Assembly (NCBI GenBank): GCA_977017575.1
Contig: CDRNVI010000059.1
Span: forward strand, 1 to 64,000
Reading direction: 5' to 3'
Length of the DNA: 64,000 nucleotides
Source of the DNA: Paramoeba atlantica
Taxonomy: Eukaryota; Protista; Discosea
The stretch's first letter is position 1. Each line of letters begins with the position of its first letter. A program made the position numbers and the translations under genes. Under the pieces are notes generated by a model, which saw only the letters and a list, made by a program, of their open reading frames with translations, was not told the DNA's origin and ran no database searches. Positions 4,291-51,421 of this stretch are shown piece after piece.

Positions 4291-4850
4291 CTAACGAGCA
4301 TGTTCCCCAACTGATCCGTTGGGTCCTCGATGCTTCAGAAGAAGCTGGATGAGTGGTGGTCGTGCTGGTGTTGGGGTCCTGATTGTCGCGTGAACTATTT
4401 TTTGGGAAATCTTTTGGAGGAATCTTTTTGGGGAGTGAAGAACACGGGTGCGAATTCGTCGTCGATGGTGCGTGTTCTGATGTGACTCGGTTCGCTTCTT
4501 TGGGATTCGGCGGTGATGATGCGTGTTCTGATCGAGATATGATTCGATTCGATTCGATTCTTGTATAGAAATCGGGGGCGGTGTCGTAGCGCTTTTGAAG
4601 CTAGAGAGTAGCTGGATCCCAGCGCGTGCGTCAGATTGCGTTGCATTATTTGCGAAGTAGATTTTCCTACGTCGAACGAGGTCTTTGGTCGATGCTACCA
4701 ACGGATTTGTCTGTTGATGGGGCGGTGATGGGGCTTGAGCCGATTCTTGTGCGGGATTTGGCGGCAGTGATACGCGTTCTGGCCGCGATGTTGTGACTTG
4801 ATTGGATTCTTGCGTGGGATTTTGCGGCGGTGCGTGTTCTGGCCGCGGTG
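4291..4850 (-). mobile_element. Repeat-containing ORF remnant upstream of the recombinase (gag-like ORF inferred)
   Basis: About 2 copies of a 60-bp unit encoding TPRPEHAPPQNPAQESDQVT, shared with 9270-9485. Confidence 0.4.
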
Positions 4851-5548: not shown

Positions 5549-5860
5549 TTGCCGCTTGCACGTGTTCTGGGCGTCCAGCAAAGCCCTGTTAGTGCTGTAG
5601 AAAGAAAACATCGGAAATACGTTGTAGAGAAAGGATTAGAACCAGAGTATTTTCGTTGCATCGCTTTAACGGATTGTGGAATGTTACATGAAGATGCCAA
5701 GGTCTTGATCAAAGCCCTTGCAAAACGAGCGGATTCTGACCCAAAAGTTATACTTGAAGCTTTTCAATTGGAAAATGAAAAGTTTGCGGCTTACACTATC
5801 GTATCGCAATTGCGGAACCACATACAGGGAGAAAAATGGCTAGGTGGCATAAGCCTTTGA
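5549..5860 (+). mobile_element. RLE endonuclease C-terminus, SLACS/CRE-like fragment
   Basis: RKHRKY...FRCIALTDCGMLH...IVSQLRN, parallel to 6531-7049; a related scrap KKFKKYVVEKG lies near 9100-9135. Confidence 0.65.
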
Positions 5861-6363
5861 AGCCAAATAATCTTCTAGTCTCCAAAGTCAAGTCTATCTC
5901 GTATTATTCAACATGGGCACAGATACAGGACCCAACAACAACATGGGCACAGATACAGGACACTAAACTCTGAGGGCTATTAAAAGGACAAAATTCCTTT
6001 TTGTTTAAGAAAGAAAGGTATTTTCTTTAGAAATAGATTTTTATATGAGGAAAATCCATATAAAAAGTGGGTAGGCTTCCGGTGGGCCTAGGAGGGTGCA
6101 CACCAAAAAAAAATTATATCTACGTATAAATATACATCATCATCATACGATAATGAGAACTTGTGAAAGTAATTGAAGCATTTATATGTAGAATAAGAAG
6201 TATGCATGCTGATCGAATTATTTATGATTAATTATGCAGTGTGATTTCAAAAGACCTTTCCATTCACGCTCTTCCTCAAAAACCCCCTTTTTGTTTAATA
6301 CCCCCTTTATATACCCGTGTGGGATGCTAATCCCCACGTGGGACGTACGAAACCATGTAGTCC

Positions 6364-6530: not shown

Positions 6531-7049
6531 TTGAAAGCTGGCATTCCTTGTGAGAAGGAACCGCGCCTATATTCAACGTATCGGTGCACGCAATGCAATG
6601 AAGTAGTCGGGCCAGAATACAGGCAGACACATAGTAAAGTGTGCGGAGGGAAATCTTTTCGGCGCTCTGGACCAGATCTCGTAATTTACTGGAATGATGG
6701 AGAAATATATTACGATTTCACCGTGGTACATGAATTAGCGCCTTCAAATTTGGGAACGAAATGCAATAAGCTATTCCGGGACGCCATCAAACGAAAACAC
6801 GATACTTATGTCGCAACAAATAAAATCGCGAAAGAAAAATTCAGATGTATTCCCATCCTCTATGGTGGATCCCTCCATTTCAATACGAAGTCGCTGTTAA
6901 TGGCCCTCGCAGATGCGGGCAGCGTACCTCGACAGCAGCTTCAGCTTGAGCTACAACTTTTGCTACAGGAGCAAAATGGTGCCATACTATATTCACAACT
7001 TCGGAATTACCTTGAGAAGGACAAGGGGGCACTCCAGTTCGCTATATAA
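6531..7049 (+). mobile_element. Zinc knuckle plus RLE endonuclease, C-terminus of a SLACS/CZAR/CRE-like retrotransposon
   Basis: CTQC...HSKVC, GPDLVI...YDFTVVH (PD..D), KRKHDTY, FRCIPILYGG. Confidence 0.8.
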
Positions 7050-7174
7050 AGAGTTTCTAAAGAGGGGAAGAGCTTCTAAAGCCTGCAGTCAGGATAGATT
7101 TTTCAGAACTTGAGATAGTAATTGGCGCATTTACATAACATATATACATGTATATATATACATGTATATATATA

Positions 7175-8106
7175 AACCCCCGCTCACGAAAAGTGACCCC
7201 CCTCTTTTTTTTTGTACAAATGTCCGTTTGAGCTGATTTTTGTTGCATTTTGCAGATCTCAACACAAGGACTTTGCGCGTGAAGAAATGAGACAAAAAGA
7301 AACGAATACGCACAATTTAGAGAAGAATTACCATTTTGTCACTTTTTCGCCCTTCAATCTTATACACTCCTTAAGTCCAGAATCAAAACTTAATACTGTT
7401 TTGTCGATCACTTTTTGAGTTAAAGAAGATCATGCTTTACGTACACATCGGATAAGTGAAGGTTTGTCCGATGGCGTTTGTTCGTCTACCGCCTCTTGGA
7501 CCATAGACCAGACGTTTTCTATGGGGGAAAGGTCGGGCGAGTTGGGGGGCCAGTTTCTTAGAACATCACTCATTCGATTCTCAATATACTCTTTGGAGGC
7601 ACGGGCAGTATGTGCCGTTGCTCTATCCTGTTGAAATACACTATTAGGGGGAAATCTACCTGTTTTAATGTTTCTATGTACGTCTCACTTGTAATAGATG
7701 TGTCATTGTAGATGTCTCACTTGTAATAGATGGTCACAGGACTCAAAGTGTATTCCTCACTAGATTTTTTTTCGTTCTGATATTTTTTGATTATCCTTCT
7801 AGAGACGTTAAAATCACGGGATAATTGTTTAATCGGAACACCTTCTGCCTGTCTCATCTTCAAAAGAACCTTACCACAATCCGTAAGCCCCCTTTTGGGA
7901 GCCGATATGGTGATTTTGTCATTTTTGGAAAAAAAAGTTGAAAAACCAATTATGTTTTTGTGACTAAATTTTAAAATTTTAAAATCAGCTAAAAACAGCG
8001 GGAACGTATAGATCTCGAAATTTTGAACGAAACAGTGGTATGATAACCCACCCACGCCCCTCTGTGCTAAAAATAAGGGGGGGTCACTTATTCGTGAGCG
8101 GAGGTT
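7175..8106 (-). mobile_element. Internally deleted Tc1/IS630-like DNA transposon (DD35E remnant)
   Basis: About 36-bp TIRs AACC(C/T)CCGCTCACGAA..AGTGACCCCCC with TA flanks; HTH-like piece near 7770-7900; FQQDRATAH...WPPNSPDLSPIENVW at about 7500-7640. Confidence 0.85.
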
Positions 8107-8126
8107 TATATATATATATATATATA

Positions 8127-9061
8127 AACCCCCCACAGCGAAAAGTCACCCTCTAACTTTTCCCCCTCTAACTTTTCAGCCAAGTGTCCGTTTGAGCTCA
8201 TTTTTGTTGCATTTTGCTGTTCCCAACACAAAGACTATGCGCGTTATAGCATGAAACCAAGGCTCTCAAATGCGTGCATCCGATAGATGGATTATCACTT
8301 TCTTCACATTTTTCAAGAGGCCAATTTCTCACACTTTAACAAATTATATCTTCTCCTCCCATGAGAATTCTAATTATTTCTGTCCGTTTTTGCTGATTTT
8401 TGTTGCAAACGAGAGATCTCGTTCTCCTAGCAAAGATCTTTGCCGCTATTTTTTAATATTGACCCACTTGTGCCCCCTGGCCGCGGAGTGTTTGTTTTCC
8501 TAAATTATTGTGGTATGACGATGCAAAAAAATCAAACCTAAAAACAATTTTCTTCTTCAGTTTCTAAAATGATCTAAAAATGGTGGGAACGTGTAGATCT
8601 CAGAATTTTGAACGAGAAAATGATATCTTGACCCCCTTAGGCCCCTTCAAGCAAAAAGTAAAGGGGACAGCTTAAAAAAGTTGATTTATCACCGTTTCAA
8701 GAAAGAACCAATCAAAGAGAAATATTCCACCACGTGACAAATTGAATGTTTGTTATCTGTTTTTGATCATTTTTGTTGCAATCGAGAGAACTCGTTCCCC
8801 TAGCGAAGATCTGTGACACCATTTTCATGTTGACCCCCTTCCCCCCCTGGTCGAGGAACATGAGATTTTTTGGGTAATATTGGCATGACTATGTAAAAAC
8901 GTCATTAAAAAAATGAGTTTTAATTTGTTATCTGTGAAGAGGTCTAAAAACAGCGGGAACGTGCAGATCTCAAAATTTTGAACGAAAAAGTGGTGCCGCA
9001 ACCCCCCTAAGCCTCGTTGTACAAAAAAAAGAGGGGGGTGACTTATTCGCTGCGGGGGGTT
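8127..9061. mobile_element. Noncoding MITE of the same TIR family, inserted in the adjoining (TA)n tract
   Basis: TIRs AACCCCCCACAGCGAA..AGTCACCC; inverted copy at 47466-48266. Confidence 0.85.
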
Positions 9062-23648: not shown

Positions 23649-24445
23649 TCAAAATGTAAAAAAAATAAAAATATCTTGTATTTTTTTTCGACGAAAAATA
23701 TAAATCCGCATAGGCGGAGCTTTCTGCCTTTTTGCCGTAGCGACGACGACTTCCTCGCATGGGAAGCTGTAAGGAGCCCTAGGATCTGCTAGGAAACTAC
23801 GGAATTGGGAGGAGGAAAGGATAAGGGCTCGCTGGAGAACTTGGGATCTGCGATCTTCCATATCACGGGAGATATCACCCGAGACAGTGACCCACTCTTT
23901 GCGATGATTCACGGCGCCGTGACGCCATTCATGGTTCAAGCATTTGCTTGCGCCGGCGCAGTCGGTGTAGATTTGGCAACGGGAGTTCTTGGCCAGGTGG
24001 CGTACGTGCGGCGTCATCGTTGCAGCATCTGTGCTCTCCAGGTATCTCACGAAGATTTTTTTCATTGGATAATGAATACAACCATGTTCATTGGGTATTT
24101 CGTCGCAGTGAACCAAAGTATGATACCAGGATGATCCGTCTCATCGGATTCTTTTGCCGCGCCCACACCCCATACGCTTAATTCGCGAAACACAGATTTC
24201 GTCTTTCTGCATGAATAAGACGGTACCTTTCGCAGCATCAAAGCGCATGTCGTGTGCGATGCCCACATCAAATTCGAAGAACTGGAATAGCTTGACAACG
24301 GTGATTCTGCTGAGTGTGGTCTCGCGCAATATCTGCTGCAAAGATAGGCCTTCAATCAGTCCATACAACACCATCAGGGTGTCTTTTAGACTTCCTTTAC
24401 TCTGTAGATTTAACAAAGGCTCCATCGAGCTGTAGCGTGCGCGAC
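23649..24445 (-). mobile_element. Merlin/IS1595 (ISXO2-like) transposase pseudogene
   Basis: FMQKDEIC..GRGKR, IYTDCAG, HGAVNHRKEWV; frameshifted; close paralogue of 36660-37523. Confidence 0.85.
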
Positions 24446-24470
24446 ATTCTAGGGCCCCCGCGCGGCCAAA

Positions 24471-24583
24471 ATGGGTACTAAAGTTTGTTATCAAGGTAGT
24501 TGGGCTTCGCAAATTGCTTCCCACGAATGGGTACTAAAATTTGTTATCAAGGTAGTTGGGCTTCGCAAATTGCTTCCCACGAA
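24471..24583. repeat. 56-bp tandem duplication at the truncated 5' end of the Merlin copy
   Basis: ATGGGTACTAAA(G/A)TTTGTTATCAAGGTAGTTGGGCTTCGCAAATTGCTTCCCACGA x2; its tail recurs near 36153-36178. Confidence 0.85.
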
Positions 24584-25310
24584 TCTAGAGAGAAGCACCC
24601 GTACAATAATTGCACGATTTTTGCTTCCGTTTGTAAGTCAAGGACTTGCACAAGTCAAGGACTTTTGTGGAACACCCAAGATTTTTTTTTTGGTTTTCAT
24701 TTTCCATGCGCCAAGCAAGCCCGGTCCGTGAGCTAGCTTATGAGTATACACTGCCGCCAAAAATTATTGAATTTTTAATTGGTGTCGAAACCGGACAACT
24801 TTTAATTTAAAATTTAATAATTTTTGTGCCAATAATTTTTGTAGAAATGTGTACATGCGCAAATCTTGGGCTGTGGGAAATTAAGCGCCCGTCGTAGTGT
24901 TTTCACGTTCTTATTGACTACCGTGGGTTGGCGGGTTGCTCGTCTCATGGCCTTCGTCAGGTGGAGTGAAATGGTGCGAGGGTGCAACAAAGAATTCAGG
25001 GTTCCAACAGAGAATTTATCATTGTACTCTTATTGGTAGATAAAAGCAATGCATGTATTAAAACAATGCAGCTAATGTTGCGTACAAAGGTGAATAACAA
25101 AAAAGAGCGCGCGTTAAAATATTTCATTTTAATATCTAGTGCGGGGACAAAGTGTAGACCGATAGAACAAAACATGGAAAAAACCCCACAAAATATCAGC
25201 ATAAAATCTGAGTAAATGTTATTGCGCACTTTCACAATTCAATACCATCAGAAAATTCAATACAATCAAAAATATTTTGGAGGTGCTCATCAAAGGGGGA
25301 GTCACAGCAA

Positions 25311-26090
25311 CTAAACTTTAGGACCGATTCCGTACGATGAGAGAGGAGTAAACGTCAGACTTTGAGCGGATTTATAGCGCTCCTTTTGTCTTCGCGTCAT
25401 TCCACGAAGTCGCTGGCGTAGATTCGTGATATCTTCAGCCTCTCGTCTCTGGAGTTCCAGTTCTTCAGTTGAGAGTACCTTACAAGGTCGGCCGCGTTTT
25501 CGCTTTTCTCCAGGTGCGCTTCTTTCGATTGTGGCACTTGCTGTCGAATTTTCGTTCTCTTCTATTATATTGATGTCCCCTTCTGCGTTCCCAATGGATG
25601 AGGTGTTAATTTCGTCGGAACCTTCATCATCCAAGAAAATCGCACCACTAGACGTATGTAAATGAGTTTGCAAATGCTTGTAGGCATCGAGACGTGACGG
25701 TCGGTTTTTTTTGCTGCCAAATAACACCACTGGAATTTCGGTTATTTCCCAGGAGGCCATAATCTGAGCTTGGGGAAGTTCTTGCATAGCCTGCACAATG
25801 TACGACACTTTTTTCTCTCGGCAAAGTGTTCGCGATGTGCAAATAACGTTGGAGATGGCTGAATTGAGGTCGGAACGCGCAAAGATGCGGGATACATCAT
25901 CGTTGTAGAGCTGAATAGCGCGTTGTTTTAGGCCAGAGATTACAAACTGATCTGCAGGTTGAAAGACATGCGTCATTTTCTTGGGAATACGAACTACGTA
26001 GCAAGAAGAACCAAGGAGAATCTCATCAGTACCACTATGCTGAGTGGCTTCATCAATAATCAAAAGGGCGGGGGCAGCGGGCTTCTTCAT
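25311..26090 (-). mobile_element. pogo/Tigger-type (DDE_1) transposase C-terminal fragment, DD33D
   Basis: LLIIDEATQH...IPKKMTHVFQPADQFVISGLK. Confidence 0.75.
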
Positions 26091-26419
26091 AGCTTCACGT
26101 TCGGAGGGCTTCCTCGACTACTAGTTCCATATCCCCGGTGCAAGCTTCGGATGGAGAACGAATTAGAAACAACAACCTAACAAGGATATATAAGAAATAG
26201 TAAAATATCCATGTAATTATAGAACACAAATCATATTTTGAAGAAATTATGTGCCCCGAAGGGCCAGCAGGCAAATACATAACAGCCCCTCGGCTAAATT
26301 TCAAAACGTGGACTATTAGTACCAGCATTCACCATGCACACACATAATTTCTTTCGTGTCATGGTGCTTTATATTATGGCACCACACTCGTTGTGCACCC
26401 AATTTGTGATTGCTTCGGA

Positions 26420-26950
26420 ACAGCACATTCACATGCATAAAATTTTAGGCACGGATTTCAACTTTTTCGAAAAGTTGGTGCGGGGTGCTATGGAAGCTCA
26501 CCTTTACTCCCGGTGAGGCCCCGGAGTTGCGAGAGGCCTCCATACCCCACAACTACCATCTTCCCCCCCTATTTAGCGGGGGACCACTCGCACACTGATA
26601 ATGCATAAAACTCGCACACTGATAATGCATAAAACTCGCACACTGATAATGCATATTGGCACACTGATAATGCATATTGATAATGCATATGTGAATGTGC
26701 TAATATGCATCTGAATGTGCTATATGCATTATCAATGTGCTATATGCAATATCAGTGTGCTATATGCATTATCAGTGTGCTATATGCATTATCAATGTGC
26801 CGCCTAGTATGCATTATCAATGTGCGGGCGCCTTCTGGACCTCTTTGCGAAAATCATTTCGCCAAGTCGGATCTCCGTAGAAGTTTACTGGGAGCGCCCG
26901 TGCGGGAGCCACCCCCCTAAGTAAGAACTAAGTAAGAAACTAAGTAAGAC
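26420..26950. repeat. About 530-bp dispersed repeat, near-identical to 50255-50790
   Basis: GC-rich module GGAAGCTCACC...TAGCGGGGG followed by ATGCAT minisatellite and TAAGTAAGAAC repeats. Confidence 0.9.
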
Positions 26951-31989: not shown

Positions 31990-32252
31990 GCATATCACTC
32001 AATGGTACGAGTAAGATTGTCCTGCTTCAAGGGATCACGAATACTGAACTGTTCGTTGATTTTTCATACGCTAATAATGAAGAATAATGCCACACAATGC
32101 CCTCAAAATGAGTGGATTACATGGGGATCTGAATTCGCCAGAGATGAACGGGGGAGGAGAGTTCGCGTCGCAATTTGACGAAGATCTTCTCTGTTAATGA
32201 GATTTACACGATTTTAGAATGTACAGCCCATTAGGCGCACCTCGGAGGGTCA

Positions 32253-32349
32253 AAGTATAGGAATATTGCATAAGTATAGGAATATTGCATAAGTATAGGA
32301 ATATTGCATAAGTATAGGAATATTGCATAAGTATAGGAATATTGCATAA
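32253..32349. repeat. 19-bp array (AAGTATAGGAATATTGCAT)n; same unit at about 32900, 34124-34176, 37518-37731, 40113-40157
   Basis: Direct reading. Confidence 0.95.
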
Positions 32350-32932
32350 CTCTATTTTTGACCCCCCACCCCTTAATATGAGTTTGTTGATTTCGGTAGA
32401 CAATTATAACCCGTGTATAGATCTGCGATTACACTGTCGGGAAACCACCTATTTTTTGTAATTTGAAACAAATTTTTACAAAGTCAAGGGTGGTATATTT
32501 CTCGAAAATATACGATTTTTTTTATTTGTTACGTGCCTCATAGACTTGTATCCCCGGGAAAATGGAATACCGAACATATGGGCACTATAACGTACCCCAA
32601 TCTGTCACTTTGAACTACTTTTACTTCAAATGAAGACTTCACATATAAGGGGTGACCCTTCTAAAATGCCCTAAAATGGCCACTTTTCGTGGATTTTGCT
32701 TAAAAAAGCTCATTTCCACCTGTTTTTGGCTACTTTGGCGGGGTCACCCCCTATATGCAACTTTTCCATTTTTAGAAAATGTGATGTGCGTATATACTTT
32801 GGAGTCTCATCTACAAGGAAAAGGATTTGTAAGATCCAATACAGGTGGGATCTTGCCAGGAGAAATTTTTCAAAAGTTAAAAAAAAATTAGAGGGGCTCT
32901 GCAATATTCCTATAAAGATAAGATAAAGATAT

Positions 32933-33320
32933 CCCGTTTGGCCGACTAGGGCTATGGGATCGTAGCAGGAATCTCCGTTACAGAGAAACCTCTACGTCGG
33001 TCTGAGTCTCTTTTTAAGTGGGGCTGAGCAACCTCTCCGTTTCCGGAAGAGTACGGGCGTCCGAATCTCACCACCGAAAACTCATCAAGGGACGTAGAGT
33101 GAGGACGCACTCATTCACCAGCGATCCCAAAGGGACGACCAGTGCCCTGAACGGGTTACCACTTTTGAGAGCAGTTACGATAAAGTAAAGTGTAGAAGCA
33201 CTTCATACAAGTACGAGGGCAAACTTACCAACGAAGTTTGCTCTTTACTTCGATCAGATATAAACTATACTATTCGGTATATACTATTCTCTGACAGTCA
33301 CTGAAGGTCAGGATGACTAT
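32933..33320. ncRNA. Candidate structured RNA of unknown class
   Basis: Nested helices CCCGTT/AACGGG, AGGGC/GCCCT, TGGGATCG/CGATCCCA, CTCTACGTC/GACGTAGAG, plus hairpins GAGGGCAAACTT/AAGTTTGCTCTT and AGTCACTGA/TCAGGATGACT. Confidence 0.4.
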
Positions 33321-34271
33321 AAATAGGACGAAGTGAAGTGGGGGGCGAAGCACTGGAGTTCAAACTTACTGTACAAAGGTGTTACACAAAAAAGTAAATG
33401 GAACTTTTGGTTGCGTGAAACCATCTTTAATAATGCCTTCAGACACTTGAATTAAAGAATTTACTCAACTTTTGCTGTTTCGGATCTTCGGACGCGGCGC
33501 CGGTTTTTGGATAGCGAGAAGACATGTTTTTATGAATTTGAAATTTCCGCTTCAGAATATTTCGCCCAACATCATTCCCTTTTTTGATTTAATATTTTCC
33601 TGAACTTTTGTGGCGTAAAAATATTTCTACATGATAATTTAGAATTGCAAAATCAATGCCTAAGTAAATTCAGTGATAGTTCGTATATAGATTTATATTG
33701 TATGCAACCTAAATGCTAAATATTTCTAAAACGATATACATTAAGTAAGTTCATAAAATATCCGGCTAATTTCCACTATAATTTTTCATCACCTGCCCAA
33801 CTTACGAATGGGAAATTTCTCGTCTACAGTTCGTTCTCCAGTCGCAAAGGAGGAAGAAAGAGGAAATCTTAGAAGATCAAAGATAAATATCTTTATTTAT
33901 CTAAGCTAAATCGGAAAGAAGGAAATCCTAGAAGATCTTCGTGGAGCCCAGAGTATCGCGTCATCCTCGTGTGCCCACACGCTTCGGGAGAGATCAAAAC
34001 GGGTAATTTTCGCTATATTTTGATTATTCAAAGGAGGACCGATGCATTTTGCCTGCCCATTGCGATGGCCGTGGTCTCGTTTATCCCTGAGTATCGTAGT
34101 AGAGTACTGAGATGCTTGTGGTGCAATATTCCTATACTTATGCAATATTCCTATACTTATGCAATATTCCTATACTTCGGAACAGCACATTCACATGCAT
34201 AAAGTTTTAGGCACCGATTTCAACCCAACTTTTGCCAAAAGTTGGTGATGGGTGCTATGGAAGCTCACCTT

Positions 34272-34462
34272 TGCTCCCGGTGAGGCCCCGGAGTTGCGAG
34301 AGGCCTCCATACCCCACAACTACCACCTTCCCCCCCTATTTAGCGGGGGTCGCGCGAGCGACCCCTGATAAATGGGGGGAAGGTGGTAGTTGTTTTGGGG
34401 AATATGAGAGGCCGAACGCACGGAGGGGCCGGCCGGGCCACTGAGTCACGTGAAAGTGTGAC
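34272..34462 (+). repeat. Left 191-bp inverted repeat with internal palindrome
   Basis: Near-exact reverse complement of 36185-36375. Confidence 0.95.
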
Positions 34463-35011
34463 ACCCAAAAACTAAACCTAGATCTTGTTTGCACAACAGA
34501 ACCGTAAATGGCACGTAAAGATAGTTGGCCGGGGATTGTGGTTTGGCCGCAGGATTGTGTATTTATTTTCCTATGCATTATCACGTTCTTTACCTTTTTG
34601 GGGGCAAATTGTGAACGTCGACCAGAAAAGAGGCATTCTAAACACTGTCAACATGGGTAACGAACTTGAAGGTATACAGGATACGGAATGAAATAACCTG
34701 TACTTTCTGCGGGAAGAAATTTCCTTCTGCGTGAAGAAATAACGACGGTACACATGGACACAAAAAATAACGAGCCTTACTCCGAGTCACTACTTTCGTC
34801 TTCTTCGTCGCGGTAGAAACTAACAGCTTTGCAGAATGTACGAATATCTTGGAAGATGCGACGTACACGGGAACCTCCGTTGACAGAGAGTGTCGCGTTA
34901 GCAATTTCTGCGAAAAACTTCATTCGGTGAGCGCGAGATATTTCATCGTTGCCAAGACGGCCCCCACGAGCTTTGAGTTCCTTTTTGAGGAGGCCATTGG
35001 CATAGCACACA

Positions 35012-35893
35012 ATGTCAAAGCGCTTGGTCCGCCACCGGAAAGTAGACGGCGAAGTAATTGGACTAGTGACCAGCCTTCTGGAACGGCGATACAGCCCGCA
35101 ACAGATTAGTGTCACTCTGAATAAGGAGCATGGTATCAGTACATCTCGGAAGGCGATTTATAATTTTATAAAACGAGATGAAGGCTACGGGGGAAACTTG
35201 GGACGTTTTCTCCGCCGTGGCGGCTCACGCCGATGTCGGCGTCGCCGTGGCTCGAATCGATTTCGTATTCAAAATCGTGTAGATATTTCTGAACGCCCTG
35301 AGATAATAAACAACAGAGAGAGATATGGAGATTGGGAAGCTGATCTCATCGAAGGCGCCAAACACAGCGGATATCTTTTAAGCCTGATCGAGCGGAAGAG
35401 TAGATTTGGAATACTGCGTAAACTTGAGAACAAAAAGTCAGATCATGTGGCTGACATGATCGTTGAAGCTCTCAAAGGCTACCGTGTGCAAAGCATTACA
35501 TACGACAATGGTACGGAATTCGCAAAGCACGAGATAATCAACCAGGCGTATGACTGCATTTCCTTTTTCTGCAAGCCGTACGCGAGCTGGGAGAAGGGGG
35601 GCGTTGAAAATTTTAATGGCCTAGTGCGCGACTATTATCCTAAAAAGCTCCCGTTTCTTGCCCAGTCGCAGGAAGAGGTGCGCCGCGTTGCATTGGAAAT
35701 AAATGAGCGTCCAAAAGAAGTTCTTGGGAACGCTTCCCCACTGAGCCTCCACAAAGAGATTTTAAAGTGTCGCCCTCCGCTCTTGTATGACTCTCCCGAC
35801 TCTGAGAATTCTCATGAAGCAGTTTCATCTGCTGGTGAAGAAGCGATTGTTAGCACCTTGGAAATCGTGCGCAATCTTGATACAATGGAGTAA
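35012..35893 (+). mobile_element. IS30-family transposase (bacterial type), lacking the N-terminal HTH
   Basis: SPQQI, AIYNFI, ISERP...RERYGDWEADLIEG, IERKSR, ITYDNGTEFA, PYASWEKGGVENFNGLVR, NERPKEVL; DD33E intact. Confidence 0.93.
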
Positions 35894-36184
35894 AGCTTTT
35901 GTGCGAAATATTATATAAAACTCGATTGTTTATTCATTTGTGCTTTCCTTATGAAATTTCCCAAAAGAGATCCTTTGGGCGTGCAAGTTTGATCTCAATA
36001 ATTAGTATCAAAAAATTCATACTTTTTCAATTGGGCTTCTTTTTCGCGTCCACAGCTCCGGTTTTTTCTCTCTTTATGATATCTAGACCTTGTCGTATCT
36101 GGGATTTCTGTGGTTTGTCTCGGTGTCGTCCAATACAACTGATCATCACCTAGGGCTTCGCAAATTGCTTCCCACGAACTCAGC

Positions 36185-36375
36185 GTCACACTTTGACGTG
36201 ACTCATTGGCCCGGCCGGCCCCTCCGTGCGTTCGGCCTCTCATATTCCCCAAAACAACTACCACCTTCCCCCCATTTATCAGGGGTCGCTCGCGCGACCC
36301 CCGCTAAATAGGGGGGGAAGGTGGTAGTTGTGGGGTATGGAGGCCTCTCGCAACTCCGGGGCCTCACCGGGAGCA
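36185..36375 (-). repeat. Right 191-bp inverted repeat
   Basis: Reverse complement of 34272-34462. Confidence 0.95.
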
Positions 36376-36532
36376 CAATTGAGGTTACCTATTTTTTATG
36401 TTAACTGTGTAGCAAAATTGTAAATTTTTGGAAGGGGTTGAAATTTTTTTTAGGGGTCGATTTTTTTTTAGGGGTTGAAATCTTTTTTAGGCCTTGAAAT
36501 TTTTTTTAAGGGGTCGCCTTTTTTTTAATCGG

Positions 36533-36665
36533 TTTATGACAGATAAGGGTGCGGCTTATATGACAGATAAGGGTGCATTATGACAGATAAGGGTGCTGTA
36601 TGACAGATAAGGGTGCCGCGTTTATGACAGATAAGGGTGCCGCGTTTATGACAGATAAGGGTGCG
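36533..36665. repeat. Tandem array of ATGACAGATAAGGGTGC (19-23-bp units) at the truncated Merlin 3' end
   Basis: About 6 units by direct reading. Confidence 0.9.
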
Positions 36666-37523
36666 AGTGGGATGTTCCACGGTATTAGTGTGGATGCCGG
36701 AGACTGTTACCCAATGTTTTCGATGGTTTACGGCCCCATGGCGCCATTCCCGATTTAGACACTTGCTGGCACCAGCGCAGTCCGTATATATTTGGCAACG
36801 GGAGTTCTTGGCAAGATGGCGCACATGAGCGGTCATAGTGGCAGCATCTGTGCTTTCCAGGTACTTTACAAATATCTCTTTCATGGGATAGTGTATGCGA
36901 CCTTCTTCATCTGGTATCTCATCGCAATGTACCAAAGTATGGTACCAAGAGGAACCATCGCGTCGGACTCTTTTCCCTCGACCGCACCCGATTCGCTTGA
37001 TCCGGGAAACGCACGTTTCGTCCTTTTGCATGAAAAGAACTGTGCCCTGTGAAGCGTCGAAGCGCATGTCGTGCGCAGTGCTAATAATGTATTCGAAGAA
37101 TTGAAACAATTTAACAATTGTAAGCTTGCCAAGAGTGCATTCGCGGGAAACTTGTTGAAGGGACATACCCTCGATGAGACCGTACAACACGATGAGTGTG
37201 TCCTTAATACTTCGTTTGCTTTTTAAATTGAATAAGGGTTCCATCGCACTGTAACGTGCTCTACACTCTGTAGTTTCCACGTAAGGACAATACCAATGGG
37301 AACCATCATGTACACACATGATTTCCTTGGTGTCATGATACTTGACTTTGTGGCACCACACCTGCTGGGCAACAAGTTTGTGATTCTTGAGCCAACGTGA
37401 TAAAAGTTCTTCTGTACTGTCCGCAAAACTGGAGAAAGAGATATTCTTTATACATTCGAACTCCTCACACCCCTCGCAAAACCAATTCACAGTATTTTGT
37501 GACATGATTAGACGGCTATGCAA
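36660..37523 (-). mobile_element. Merlin/IS1595 (ISXO2-like) transposase, open frame, 3'-truncated
   Basis: Cys-rich N-terminus, FMQKDETC, GRGKR...W, IYTD, VNHRKHWVTVSGIHTNTVE. Confidence 0.9.
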
Positions 37524-37731
37524 TATTCCTATACTTACATGTATGCAATGTTCCTATACTTGTGCAATATTCCTATACTTGTGCAATATTCCTATACTTA
37601 TGCAATATTCCTATACTTATGCAATATTCCTATACTTATGCAATATTCCTATACTTATGCAATATTCCTATACTTATGCAATATTCCTATACTTATGCAA
37701 TATTCCTATACTTATGCAATATTCCTATACT
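37518..37731. repeat. 19-bp array TGCAATATTCCTATACTTA, about 11 units
   Basis: Direct reading. Confidence 0.95.
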
Positions 37732-38144
37732 TCCACCCCTCGGAGCCCCAGAACACATACAAAGAACATCCAAAAAGAACGATTGCAAGTCGCGCAACTC
37801 GATTCACAGGTGTTCTGGAGCTCTAAAGTCAGGTCAAATAGGAATGAGCAAGCATACCACAAGGTTACGCCATTCCTTGGTCGACAGCATGCGTAGGCGC
37901 ATATAGACATCAATCAAGGCACAAGAAAGAGTTCCGCTAGTATTCATTTCAAGGTACATACTTCGTTTTTGTGCATCAGTAAATTATGTTTTTCGCCTAA
38001 AAAATCTTACCTCGAAATTGCAAAAAAACACATGTTTTTCTTTACTTGCATACGATCACACTTTTGTTACAAAGCCGATTGAGTCGGAAGCTCTATGGCA
38101 ACATATACCTAGTACCCACGCGTACACTACTCTGATATACTACT

Positions 38145-49960: not shown

Positions 49961-50065
49961 GAAAAACGTACCTTTTGGACGACTCGAGACCCTCGTCTTC
50001 GGAAGCAAACCCCATTTTGCCGCATATGCTTTTTTCAACAGGAAGTGTGGGATAGGCGTTAGCAC

Positions 50066-51282
50066 ATTTATAATGCATATTAACTGCACGTTTATAATGC
50101 ATACTAAGCGGCACATTCAAATGCATATAGCACATTCACATGCATAACAGCACATTCACATGCATAATGCACATTCACATGCATATTAAGCGGCACATTC
50201 ACATGCATAAATCTGGCACATTCACATGCATAGAGCACATTCACATGCATAACAGCACATTCACATGCATAAAATTTTAGGCACGGATTTTAACTTTTTC
50301 GAAAAGTTGGTGCGGGGTGCTATGGAAGCTCACCTTTGCTCCCGGTGAGGCCCCGGAGTTGCGAGAGGCCTCCATACCCCACAACTACCACCTTCCCCCC
50401 CTATTTAGCGGGGGACCACTCGCACACTGATAATGCATAAAACTCGCACACTGATAATGCATAAAACTCGCACACTGATAATGCATATTGGCACACTGAT
50501 AATGCATATTGATAATGCATATGTGAATGTGCTAATATGCATCTGAATGTGCTATATGCATTATCAATGTGCTATATGCAATATCAGTGTGCTATATGCA
50601 TTATCAGTGTGCTATATGCATTATCAATGTGCCGCCTAGTATGCATTATCAATGTGCCGCCTAGTATGCATTATCAATGTGCGGGCGCCTTCTGGACCTC
50701 TTTGCGAAAATCATTTCGCCAAGTCGGATCTCCGTAGAAGTTTACTGGGAGCGCCCGTGCGGGAGCCACCCCCCTAAGTAAGAACTAAGTAAGAAACTAG
50801 CGCGACCCCCGCTAAATAGGGGGGGAAGGTGGTAGTTGTTTGGGGGGAAATGAGAGGCCGAACGCACGGAGGGGCCGGCCGGGCCAATGAGCCAATAATA
50901 TCTACACGTTTTTTGAATTTTGTGATTAAAAGGGAAGGATCAACAAAATTGAGAAATATGCATGTGAATGTGCTTTATGCATGCGAATGTGCTATATGCA
51001 TTTGAATGTGCTGTTATGCATTTGAATGTGCTGTTATGCATTTGAATGTGCTGTTATGCATTTGAATGTGCTGTTATGCATGTGAATGTGCCGCTTAGTA
51101 TGCATTATCAATGTGCAGTAAATATGCATTTGTATGTGCTATATGCATGTGAATGTGCTGTTATGCATGTGAATGTGCTGTTATGCACCTGAATGTGCTA
51201 TATGCATGTGAATGTGCTAATATGCATCTGAATGTGCTATATGCATTATAAATGTGCCGCTTAGTATGCATTATAAATGTGC
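50066..51282. mobile_element. Foldback-like element with modular inverted arms of 17-19-bp ATGCAT units
   Basis: Left arm (GCACATTCACATGCATA)n 50066-50272; right arm (TATGCATGTGAATGTGC)n 50960-51282; GC-rich hairpin modules inside. Confidence 0.75.
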
Positions 51283-51421
51283 GGGCGGCATACGCAAGAC
51301 CGTAGAGGAAGGAGGAGGCGCAAGGCCAAAAGCAGAAGGTGGAGCCTTTTTGCCACAGCGACGACGACTTCCTCGCGTGGGAAGCTCTAAGGAGTCCTAG
51401 AGAACATGTTTTTACTGCGTA

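Follow-up and report, generated by a model that had tools for sequence, protein, structure and literature searches.

Eukaryotic superfamilies of DNA transposons are each tied to a family of prokaryotic insertion sequences (IS), as Tc1/mariner is to IS630 and Merlin to IS1595 (IS1016), the IS3EU and IS481EU groups being more recent additions. The DNA described here, 64,000 nucleotides from Paramoeba atlantica (GenBank assembly GCA_977017575.1, contig CDRNVI010000059.1, positions 1 to 64,000; hereafter the window), holds an IS30-type transposase gene lying between two long inverted repeats. It is a true IS30-family gene in native eukaryotic DNA and part of a multi-copy, diversified family resident there. 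The window thus adds direct evidence of transposition of such elements in a kinetoplastid-like eukaryote, in the form of 2-3-bp target duplications, an interrupted gene that is also found insert-free, and gene-less derivatives. The locus as a whole is very probably a dead, truncated IS30-type copy nested in a Merlin-type element, each of the two having its own 3' hairpin module, called M below.

Bacterial IS30 (E. coli IS30, profile NF033563) is a one-gene element of ~1.2 kb, with single inverted repeats of 20-30 bp at its ends. IS30-family elements make 2-3-bp target duplications, and bacterial IS30 prefers palindromic hot spots. Another type of organization is found in the foldback (FB) elements of Drosophila and in miniature inverted-repeat transposable elements (MITEs), where long inverted terminal regions consist of short tandem repeats, and where gene-less derivatives keep the ends and a hairpin core. 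To our knowledge, kinetoplastids have long been thought to be devoid of DNA transposons, except for a few Merlin remnants. Merlin, recognized by an 8-bp target duplication and terminal inverted repeats starting with GG, and in which internal tandem repeats have been noted, was the first DNA transposon to be described in kinetoplastids and, until now, the only one (Bodo saltans, Perkinsela) (PMC8101967).

IS481EU and IS3EU are eukaryotic DNA transposon groups with transposases like those of prokaryotic IS481 and IS3, and the prokaryote-eukaryote links given for such elements are IS630-Tc1 and IS3/IS481-IS3EU/IS481EU, IS30 being unmentioned (PMC10045372, PMC13343696). The Ginger paper names IS30 merely as a bacterial relative of integrases. 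Within the literature searched, neither a eukaryotic counterpart or lineage of IS30 nor the term 'IS30EU' was found, and the search combining IS30 with kinetoplastids yielded irrelevant matches only, namely three surveys of pathogens in rodents and small mammals and one modelling paper. The statement of a first-pass annotation of this DNA, that no eukaryotic IS30 group is established, holds within that literature.

The IS30-type gene and its protist family

The open reading frame (ORF) of the IS30-type copy matches the NCBIfam profile NF033563 ('IS30 family transposase') at 233.9 bits (E 2.7e-69, cut-off 80), the alignment covering positions 31-266 of the 267 in the profile, while the IS481 profile gives 58.9 bits, under its cut-off of 224. 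Residues 105-190 correspond to Pfam rve, and the catalytic triad (D111, D165 and E199, spaced D-53-D-33-E) falls in alignment columns conserved with the bacterial relatives. The uninterrupted 293-codon frame and the intact DD33E proposed by the first-pass annotation are therefore both confirmed. Its claim that only the N-terminal helix-turn-helix (HTH) is lacking is right in that the first HTH (HTH_38) is gone, together with the first 69 residues, leaving the protein without the full pair of HTH regions of IS30; a second HTH-like stretch is nevertheless kept (HTH_32, residues 7-52, a weak match). The sister protein P0001, encoded at locus L001, is 97% identical to the window ORF from its residue 70 on, and its 69 additional N-terminal residues carry the first HTH (HTH_38/HTH_24 at 16-51). 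Full family copies match the first-HTH profile as well (32.5 bits for P0004 and 33.9 for P0005, against a cut-off of 27).

A word search with the window protein returned 806 relatives. The best six (P0001-P0005 and P0038) show 54-97% identity, and the four whose contigs were examined (P0001, P0002, P0004 and P0005) come from long contigs of a single ENA assembly, ERZ24900291, where the P0004 copy is flanked by PIG-P/kinesin genes and HSP90 genes. Four public sequencing runs of the organism also hold the gene. The remaining relatives, ~50% identical, are metagenomic or bacterial and, where named, are IS30 family transposases, two of them from Verrucomicrobiota. In a quick maximum-likelihood tree of 45 rows (every third match of at least 295 residues sampled, midpoint root), the seven protist IS30 proteins form one clade with an SH-aLRT of 100, the 38 other rows, called bacterial or metagenomic from their record names and contig sizes, lying across that branch. 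On copy number and phylogenetic placement, two points raised by the first-pass annotation, the family is multi-copy and has a clade of its own, apart from these 38 relatives.

The protist family shares with bacterial IS30 the profile match, the DDE triad with its 33-residue D-E spacing, a single gene per element, two N-terminal HTH regions in the full copies, and target duplications of 2-3 bp. It differs in its host, a eukaryote, and in its size (~2.5 kb; the full relatives at L005 and L001 span ~2.0-2.5 kb), and departs from the compact format of ~1-1.25 kb with single 20-30-bp terminal inverted repeats. Its ends are inverted arrays with 6-24 copies of ~20-bp units and, unlike in bacterial IS30, the 3' part of its elements is long and non-coding, containing T-rich repeats and a conserved hairpin of ~180 nt. 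The protist proteins also have a clade-specific C-terminal tail, RPxLL-V/Y-DS..SE, absent from the bacterial relatives. In the window ORF (residues ~255-293), P0002, P0003 and P0005, this tail is followed by an acidic serine-rich stretch; presumably, it resembles a SUMO-interaction-type or phospho-acidic motif. With IS481EU and IS3EU, the family has in common that it is a eukaryotic lineage, with an rve-type DDE transposase nearest to one prokaryotic IS family and a domain-specific clade, but both the IS family (IS30 rather than IS481, by the above scores) and the host group (kinetoplastid-like for the window) are different.

Target duplications were read at three members of the family: AT for the window copy, GGT or GG for the element in L005, and ATA or TA for a gene-less foldback derivative at 50055-51289, one shared letter leaving 2 versus 3 bp open in the last two. 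They therefore fit the 2-3 bp of the IS30 family. Intact members would move by an IS30-type DDE mechanism, for which the terminal arrays would be the transposase binding sites. As a single case, the L005 element (2660-2720, 4750-4830) sits in the middle of a palindrome (left …GTTTAAGCGCAC…, right …GTGCGCTTAAAC…), a target that recalls the preference of bacterial IS30.

A nested insertion in a Merlin-type carrier

The IS30-type copy splits a transposase gene of the opposite strand. To its right, a minus-strand ORF (36534-37523, 329 codons) abuts the right IS30 array, its meaningful part stopping at ...HTNTVE. To the left of the IS30 start, the minus-strand frame reads ...ANGLLKKELKARGGRLG... 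down to a stop codon at 34777-34779. The uninterrupted relative P0124 reads ...HTNTVEAANSSFNKELKSRGGRLG... across the split point and, as the two halves are contiguous when compared to it, they are one gene, cut within one codon and resuming 1,668 bp later. Insert-free forms are found in public runs of the organism: contigs of runs X3 and X4 pass from 35001 straight to 36672, with two letters (AT) that match either side, and contigs of runs X1 and X2 show a similar joint, from 34985 to 36668. From the X3 and X4 joint, the inserted segment is 35004-36671, with AT on either side.

The carrier of the split gene has the hallmarks of Merlin. Within the window, CCTCGGAG is found only twice (32240-32247 and 37738-37745), directly outside the carrier ends, and is an 8-bp target duplication, within the 8-9 bp of Merlin; the ends read GGTCAAAGTATAGG... 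and GGTGGAAGTATAGG..., both beginning with GG. On its own strand, the carrier consists of the left array (37732-37542), the split gene, M (34462-34256), a further stretch, and the right array (32349-32253). With Merlin/IS1595 it shares the 8-bp duplication, the GG ends, IS1595-type motifs (DET..., YTD..., VNH..., HTNTVE, in this order) and internal tandem repeats. Unlike Merlin/IS1595, it has 19-bp arrays as ends and contains the M hairpin of the IS30-type elements, and DDE_Tnp_IS1595 stays below significance. Its protein is probably IS1595/Merlin-like, judging from motifs, profiles and language-model features. Neither Pfam nor NCBIfam gave a significant match to the Merlin-like pieces, and in Pfam the window pieces did not match DDE_Tnp_IS1595 even at E 10. 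Among the homologues of the carrier protein (P0121-P0125, found in the same assembly only), P0124 weakly matches Pfam PF12762 (DDE_Tnp_IS1595), at E 0.088. Language-model (Atlas) features place PF12762 clusters at the top, at 0.93 with 199/256 features shared, and all ten best family-bearing clusters belong to an IS1595-related family or clan. The L002 locus holds a smaller relative, made of an array, the gene, two tandem M, an inverted array and an outer direct repeat of 8-10 bp (CTCCAACATG); at L003, M is followed by the right array.

The whole carrier also has an empty site. Some contigs of runs X1, X2 and X3, aligning from 37738 rightward, carry the 30 letters of window 32210-32239 directly before, and are the site without the 5.5-kb carrier, with a single CCTCGGAG. 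The carrier insertion is therefore polymorphic or heterozygous in the sequenced material, which hints at recent Merlin-type activity in this kinetoplastid-like organism.

The structure of the IS30-type copy can be read from its sister in L001. Window 35009-35734 corresponds to L001 6205-6930 (99.4% DNA identity), and window 35735-36576 to L001 7488-8329 (99.3%). The L001 letters in between (6931-7487) are a 557-bp insertion with a 76-bp tandem repeat, at the point equivalent to window 35734/35735, so that the L001 C-terminus is broken and that of the window copy intact. In L001, the left array (5816-5979) has eight GCACCCTTATCTGTCATA units, which are the window right-array units inverted; it is followed by the gene, one module M (7938-8143), the T-rich 19-bp repeats (8174-8280), and a right array in which the left-array units are inverted, ending in ...GAGTGGG. 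The homology begins at window 35009 and the L001 plan is followed rightward to 36671, with nothing of it further left. Other public-run contigs diverge from the window exactly after 36671, where the right terminus of the element therefore lies. No left end is present: ~400 bp are gone, including the whole left array and the first 69 codons. Judging from what L001 and the window copy each keep, a full-length P0001-type gene would have ~362 codons. Retroposition, considered as a cause of this 5' truncation, is ruled out, with no poly(A) and a normal right terminal array at the end.

Having lost its left end and its first HTH, the window copy is immobile. It is a dead fragment, which can neither move nor make a complete transposase, and not the captured new mobile unit that the first-pass annotation had envisaged; taken alone, this copy is an ordinary dead fragment. 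It is also young, since it differs from L001 at only 4 of 723 coding bases (2 synonymous and 2 nonsynonymous), and at this age the open 293-codon frame needs no selection. The proposed dN/dS check is uninformative, as the nearest copy differs at 4 coding sites only, while divergence from the remaining subfamilies is too great (61-63% protein identity). Regarding expression, none of the runs listed as holding the sequence is on record as RNA, and its words were almost absent from the one run of the species that may be RNA.

In the likely order of events, the Merlin/IS1595-type element would have entered the chromosome first, with its 8-bp target duplication. An IS30-type element of the resident family would later have landed in the Merlin-type transposase gene, between ...HTNTVE and ANGLL..., with a 2-bp (AT) duplication. 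The five letters AGCAC (35004-35008), between AT and the start of homology, resemble the L001 left tip GGCAC, as would fit an element that inserted with its left end before an internal deletion of ~400 bp truncated it. An equally good fit is that a double-strand break captured a broken fragment via AT microhomology. An inversion between the two M arms, considered as the origin of the arrangement, is ruled out, as undoing it puts the now collinear, codon-exact Merlin-like halves on opposite strands.

Several points weigh against the nested reading. The 2-bp AT match of the flanks is expected by chance in 1/16 of cases, and is compatible with the microhomology capture just mentioned. The left junction (35004/35005) is bridged by no independent read or contig among those examined, Logan contigs ending at repeats. 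Contigs without the IS30 segment may stem from paralogous Merlin-type copies rather than from this locus; what they establish is that the gene exists uninterrupted, rather than that this insertion is polymorphic. For the carrier protein, assignment to IS1595 has weak support in sequence, as seen from the E-value of its relative and the feature score. The unassigned 1.77-kb segment 32350-34121 and the array 34122-34177 fall outside the nested reading; 32350-34177 might be another unit of Merlin type, devoid of a gene and fused in tandem.

The hairpin module M and the competing explanations

The two inverted-repeat arms around the IS30-type gene, near-identical as the first-pass annotation had noted, are slightly longer than the 191 bp it gave (207 nt each, 96% complementary), and each does contain a palindrome, perfect over 20 nt/20 nt. 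The palindrome 20-mer occurs 7 times in the window, including at 26549, 50381 and 50820, versus 0 in 100 shuffles. The recurrence of repeat halves near 26500-26580 and 50330-50890, also claimed earlier, was recovered by BLAST (26413-26582, 50251-50414 and 50802-50894). Each arm is a copy of M, which has a core of ~175 nt, extended to 207 nt in both window copies, has inverted ends (TGGCCCGG... / ...CCGGGAGCA), and forms a single long hairpin when folded as DNA (-66.1 kcal/mol, z = -9.5). Since the IS30 gene and the Merlin-like gene lie on opposite strands (plus and minus, respectively), their modules face each other and look like an inverted repeat. The 20 gene-proximal nt of M (34440-34462 and 36185-36207) form a palindrome of their own, GTCAC...GTGAC with TGACTCA, common to the two window modules and L001, but not L002.

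In 8/8 elements examined (the window IS30 fragment, the window Merlin-type element, L001, L002, L003, L004, L005, and the foldback element at 50055-51289), M is found on the 3' side of the gene, ahead of the right terminal array, and its orientation relative to the gene does not vary. Its identity is 99% in L001, 85% in L004 (P0002-type) and 96.7% in L005 (P0004-type); the tandem modules of L002 (5852-6028 and 6109-6280) are at 96.6% and 98.3%, and that of L003 (2385-2561), beside the right array, at 94.4%. Across carriers, M is 95-98% identical, whereas the IS30 proteins are at 61-63% and the Merlin-type gene DNA at 66-68%. Its word depth is ~30-80x that of its neighbours in four runs, contig depth being no copy number. 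This identity and abundance argue for recent spread or exchange, while a position and an orientation that do not change speak for a functional part built into the elements. A search of 185,579 bacterial and archaeal genomes found no copy of the M 20-mer, which also has no true match in JGI metagenomes (one 22-nt chance match, without the module). In Rfam, the search of 32000-38000 gave one sub-threshold match, of a miRNA model on the palindrome (31.8 bits versus a gathering score of 100). Two unrelated kinds of transposons in one genome thus have the same architecture, with array ends and one highly conserved hairpin, a pattern suggestive of a constraint specific to the host or of a parasite common to both.

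The composite proposed in the first-pass annotation, in which the 207-nt repeats would be the ends of a new unit with a captured, HTH-less IS30 transposase, draws on the position of two highly complementary arms on both sides of the ORF and on the great abundance of the repeat. It is highly improbable, since the inserted segment does not include the left arm, and L001, the 99%-identical sister copy, has a single M. The arms belong to two different nested elements: the left one is downstream of the Merlin-like stop codon, where uninterrupted Merlin-type elements also have M, and the insert-free contigs lose 35002-36671, not 34256-36391. The target duplications sought at the outer edges of the arms were not seen on inspection. 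The alternative that the annotation itself had held against its composite, a single neutral fragment with independently inserted repeats, comes close, as the copy is a fragment and the arms were not acquired as a pair. M might rather be an independent palindromic MITE, inserted separately into IS30-type and Merlin-type elements. The near-identity of M in carriers whose genes are far more diverged, a word depth far above that of either gene, its own inverted ends and hairpin fold, and the tandem pair in L002 would all be accounted for. This is nonetheless somewhat unlikely, given that the eight elements, which represent three IS30 subfamilies and the Merlin type, agree in where M lies and which way it points (~1/128 for random orientation), the lack of a recognizable target duplication around M in the four contexts read, and the location of every M of the window and of six loci within array-ended elements. 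That M is a cis-acting module, on which both the IS30-type and the Merlin-type elements have come to depend in this kinetoplastid-like host, is a speculative proposal and an unlikely one. M could then act in 3'-end formation of the transposase mRNA in polycistronic units, possibly with the T-run-AG repeats, or in a hairpin-dependent transposition step, and selection or frequent exchange would hold it >95% identical across carriers otherwise 35-40% diverged. If true, such a dependence would be a convergent, host-imposed re-engineering of bacterial-type transposons.

Two further explanations concern the gene itself. An assembly chimera or bacterial contamination, by which a bacterial IS30 gene was misjoined to protist repeats, could be argued from the closest non-protist relatives, which are bacterial or metagenomic IS30 proteins at ~50% (some from Verrucomicrobiota), and from the left junction, spanned by none of the contigs listed. 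Its probability is close to nil. The Merlin-like gene resumes within one codon after the insert, with a 2-bp duplication; the same element lies among eukaryotic genes on other contigs of the assembly; the 3' half consists of the protist-specific M and arrays, with an M 20-mer foreign to the bacterial and archaeal genomes searched; and the gene is present in four runs of the organism. Moreover, the window has the character of nuclear DNA of a kinetoplastid-like protist, with long intron-less ORFs and dense 19-26-bp minisatellites. Its topoisomerase IB has the N-terminal and core domains without the C-terminal catalytic piece, as in the kinetoplastid-type large subunit, the best solved relative being the Leishmania bi-subunit enzyme (2b9s_A, E 2.5e-152). 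The IS30 gene is not a contaminant, because it lies inside another eukaryotic transposon in a window with this topoisomerase, and the earlier claim of native DNA is upheld. It is also very unlikely that the truncated ORF was kept for a function, for example as a shortened transposase repressing the family or as a domesticated protein. It does have 293 open codons, an intact catalytic triad and the second HTH, and its start Met is found in P0001 and in the same column of P0002, the short form P0038 starting at the aligned position. However, the few differences from L001, split evenly between synonymous and nonsynonymous, explain the open frame without selection, and the ORF is antisense within a dead transposase gene.

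Feature coordinates and neighbouring elements

Table 1. Features of the nested elements and of related foldback copies in the window.
Feature	Coordinates	Strand	Remarks
5'-truncated IS30-type transposon copy, P0001-type subfamily, 1,668 bp	35004..36671	+	AT at 35002-35003 and 36672-36673
IS30 transposase ORF	35012..35893	+	293 codons, uninterrupted; begins at internal Met (= M70 of full protein)
Module M of IS30-type element (right arm)	36185..36391	+	once, same place, in L001, L004, L005
T-rich 19-bp tandem repeats (T-run then AGGGG) between M and right terminal array	36399..36530	+	
Right terminal array of IS30-type element, six ~20-24-bp units (TATGACAGATAAGGGTGC), ending ...GAGTGGG	36532..36671	+	
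Merlin/IS1595-type transposon, 5.49 kb including nested inserts	32248..37737	-	8-bp duplication CCTCGGAG outside both ends
Left terminal array, ten 19-bp units	37542..37732	-	Merlin-type element
N-terminal part of probable IS1595/Merlin-like transposase gene, ends ...HTNTVE	36675..37523	-	E codon 36675-36677
C-terminal part of same gene (...ANGLLKKELK...SDSE, then stop)	34780..35003	-	contiguous with N-terminal part, judged by P0124 and insert-free contigs
Module M of Merlin-type element (left arm)	34256..34462	-	as in L002, L003
Internal three-unit array of left-end type	34122..34177	-	precedes 1.77-kb segment 32350-34121
Right terminal array, five 19-bp units, inverted relative to left array	32253..32349	-	Merlin-type element
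Gene-less foldback derivative, P0004-type IS30 subfamily	50055..51289	-	ATA/ATA flanks
Partial copy of same foldback, half of M and same minisatellites	26413..26825	+	within second degraded Merlin-like gene

In IS30-type elements, the T-rich 19-bp units that separate M from the right terminal array consist of 8-9 T followed by AGGGG, and similar units are found at the end of L004 (4924-4974). A pyrimidine tract followed by AG is the kinetoplastid signal guiding trans-splicing and polyadenylation; by analogy, the IS30-type element may carry its own mRNA-processing signals in these arrays.

The foldback element at 50055-51289 consists of inverted GCACATTCACATGCATA arrays around an M with a minisatellite-filled loop, and has exactly the same two termini as the P0004-type element in L005, which does bear a gene. 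Its layout recalls that of FB elements; unlike in FB, the arrays here belong to autonomous elements of IS30 and Merlin type.

A second copy of the Merlin-like gene (23856-24449 and 26319-26411) is degraded, with 80% protein identity and one in-frame stop. It is split by ~1.9 kb containing a pogo-like DDE_1 ORF (25314-26090), and adjoins the foldback fragment. Window 23856-26411 is another nest of DNA transposons.

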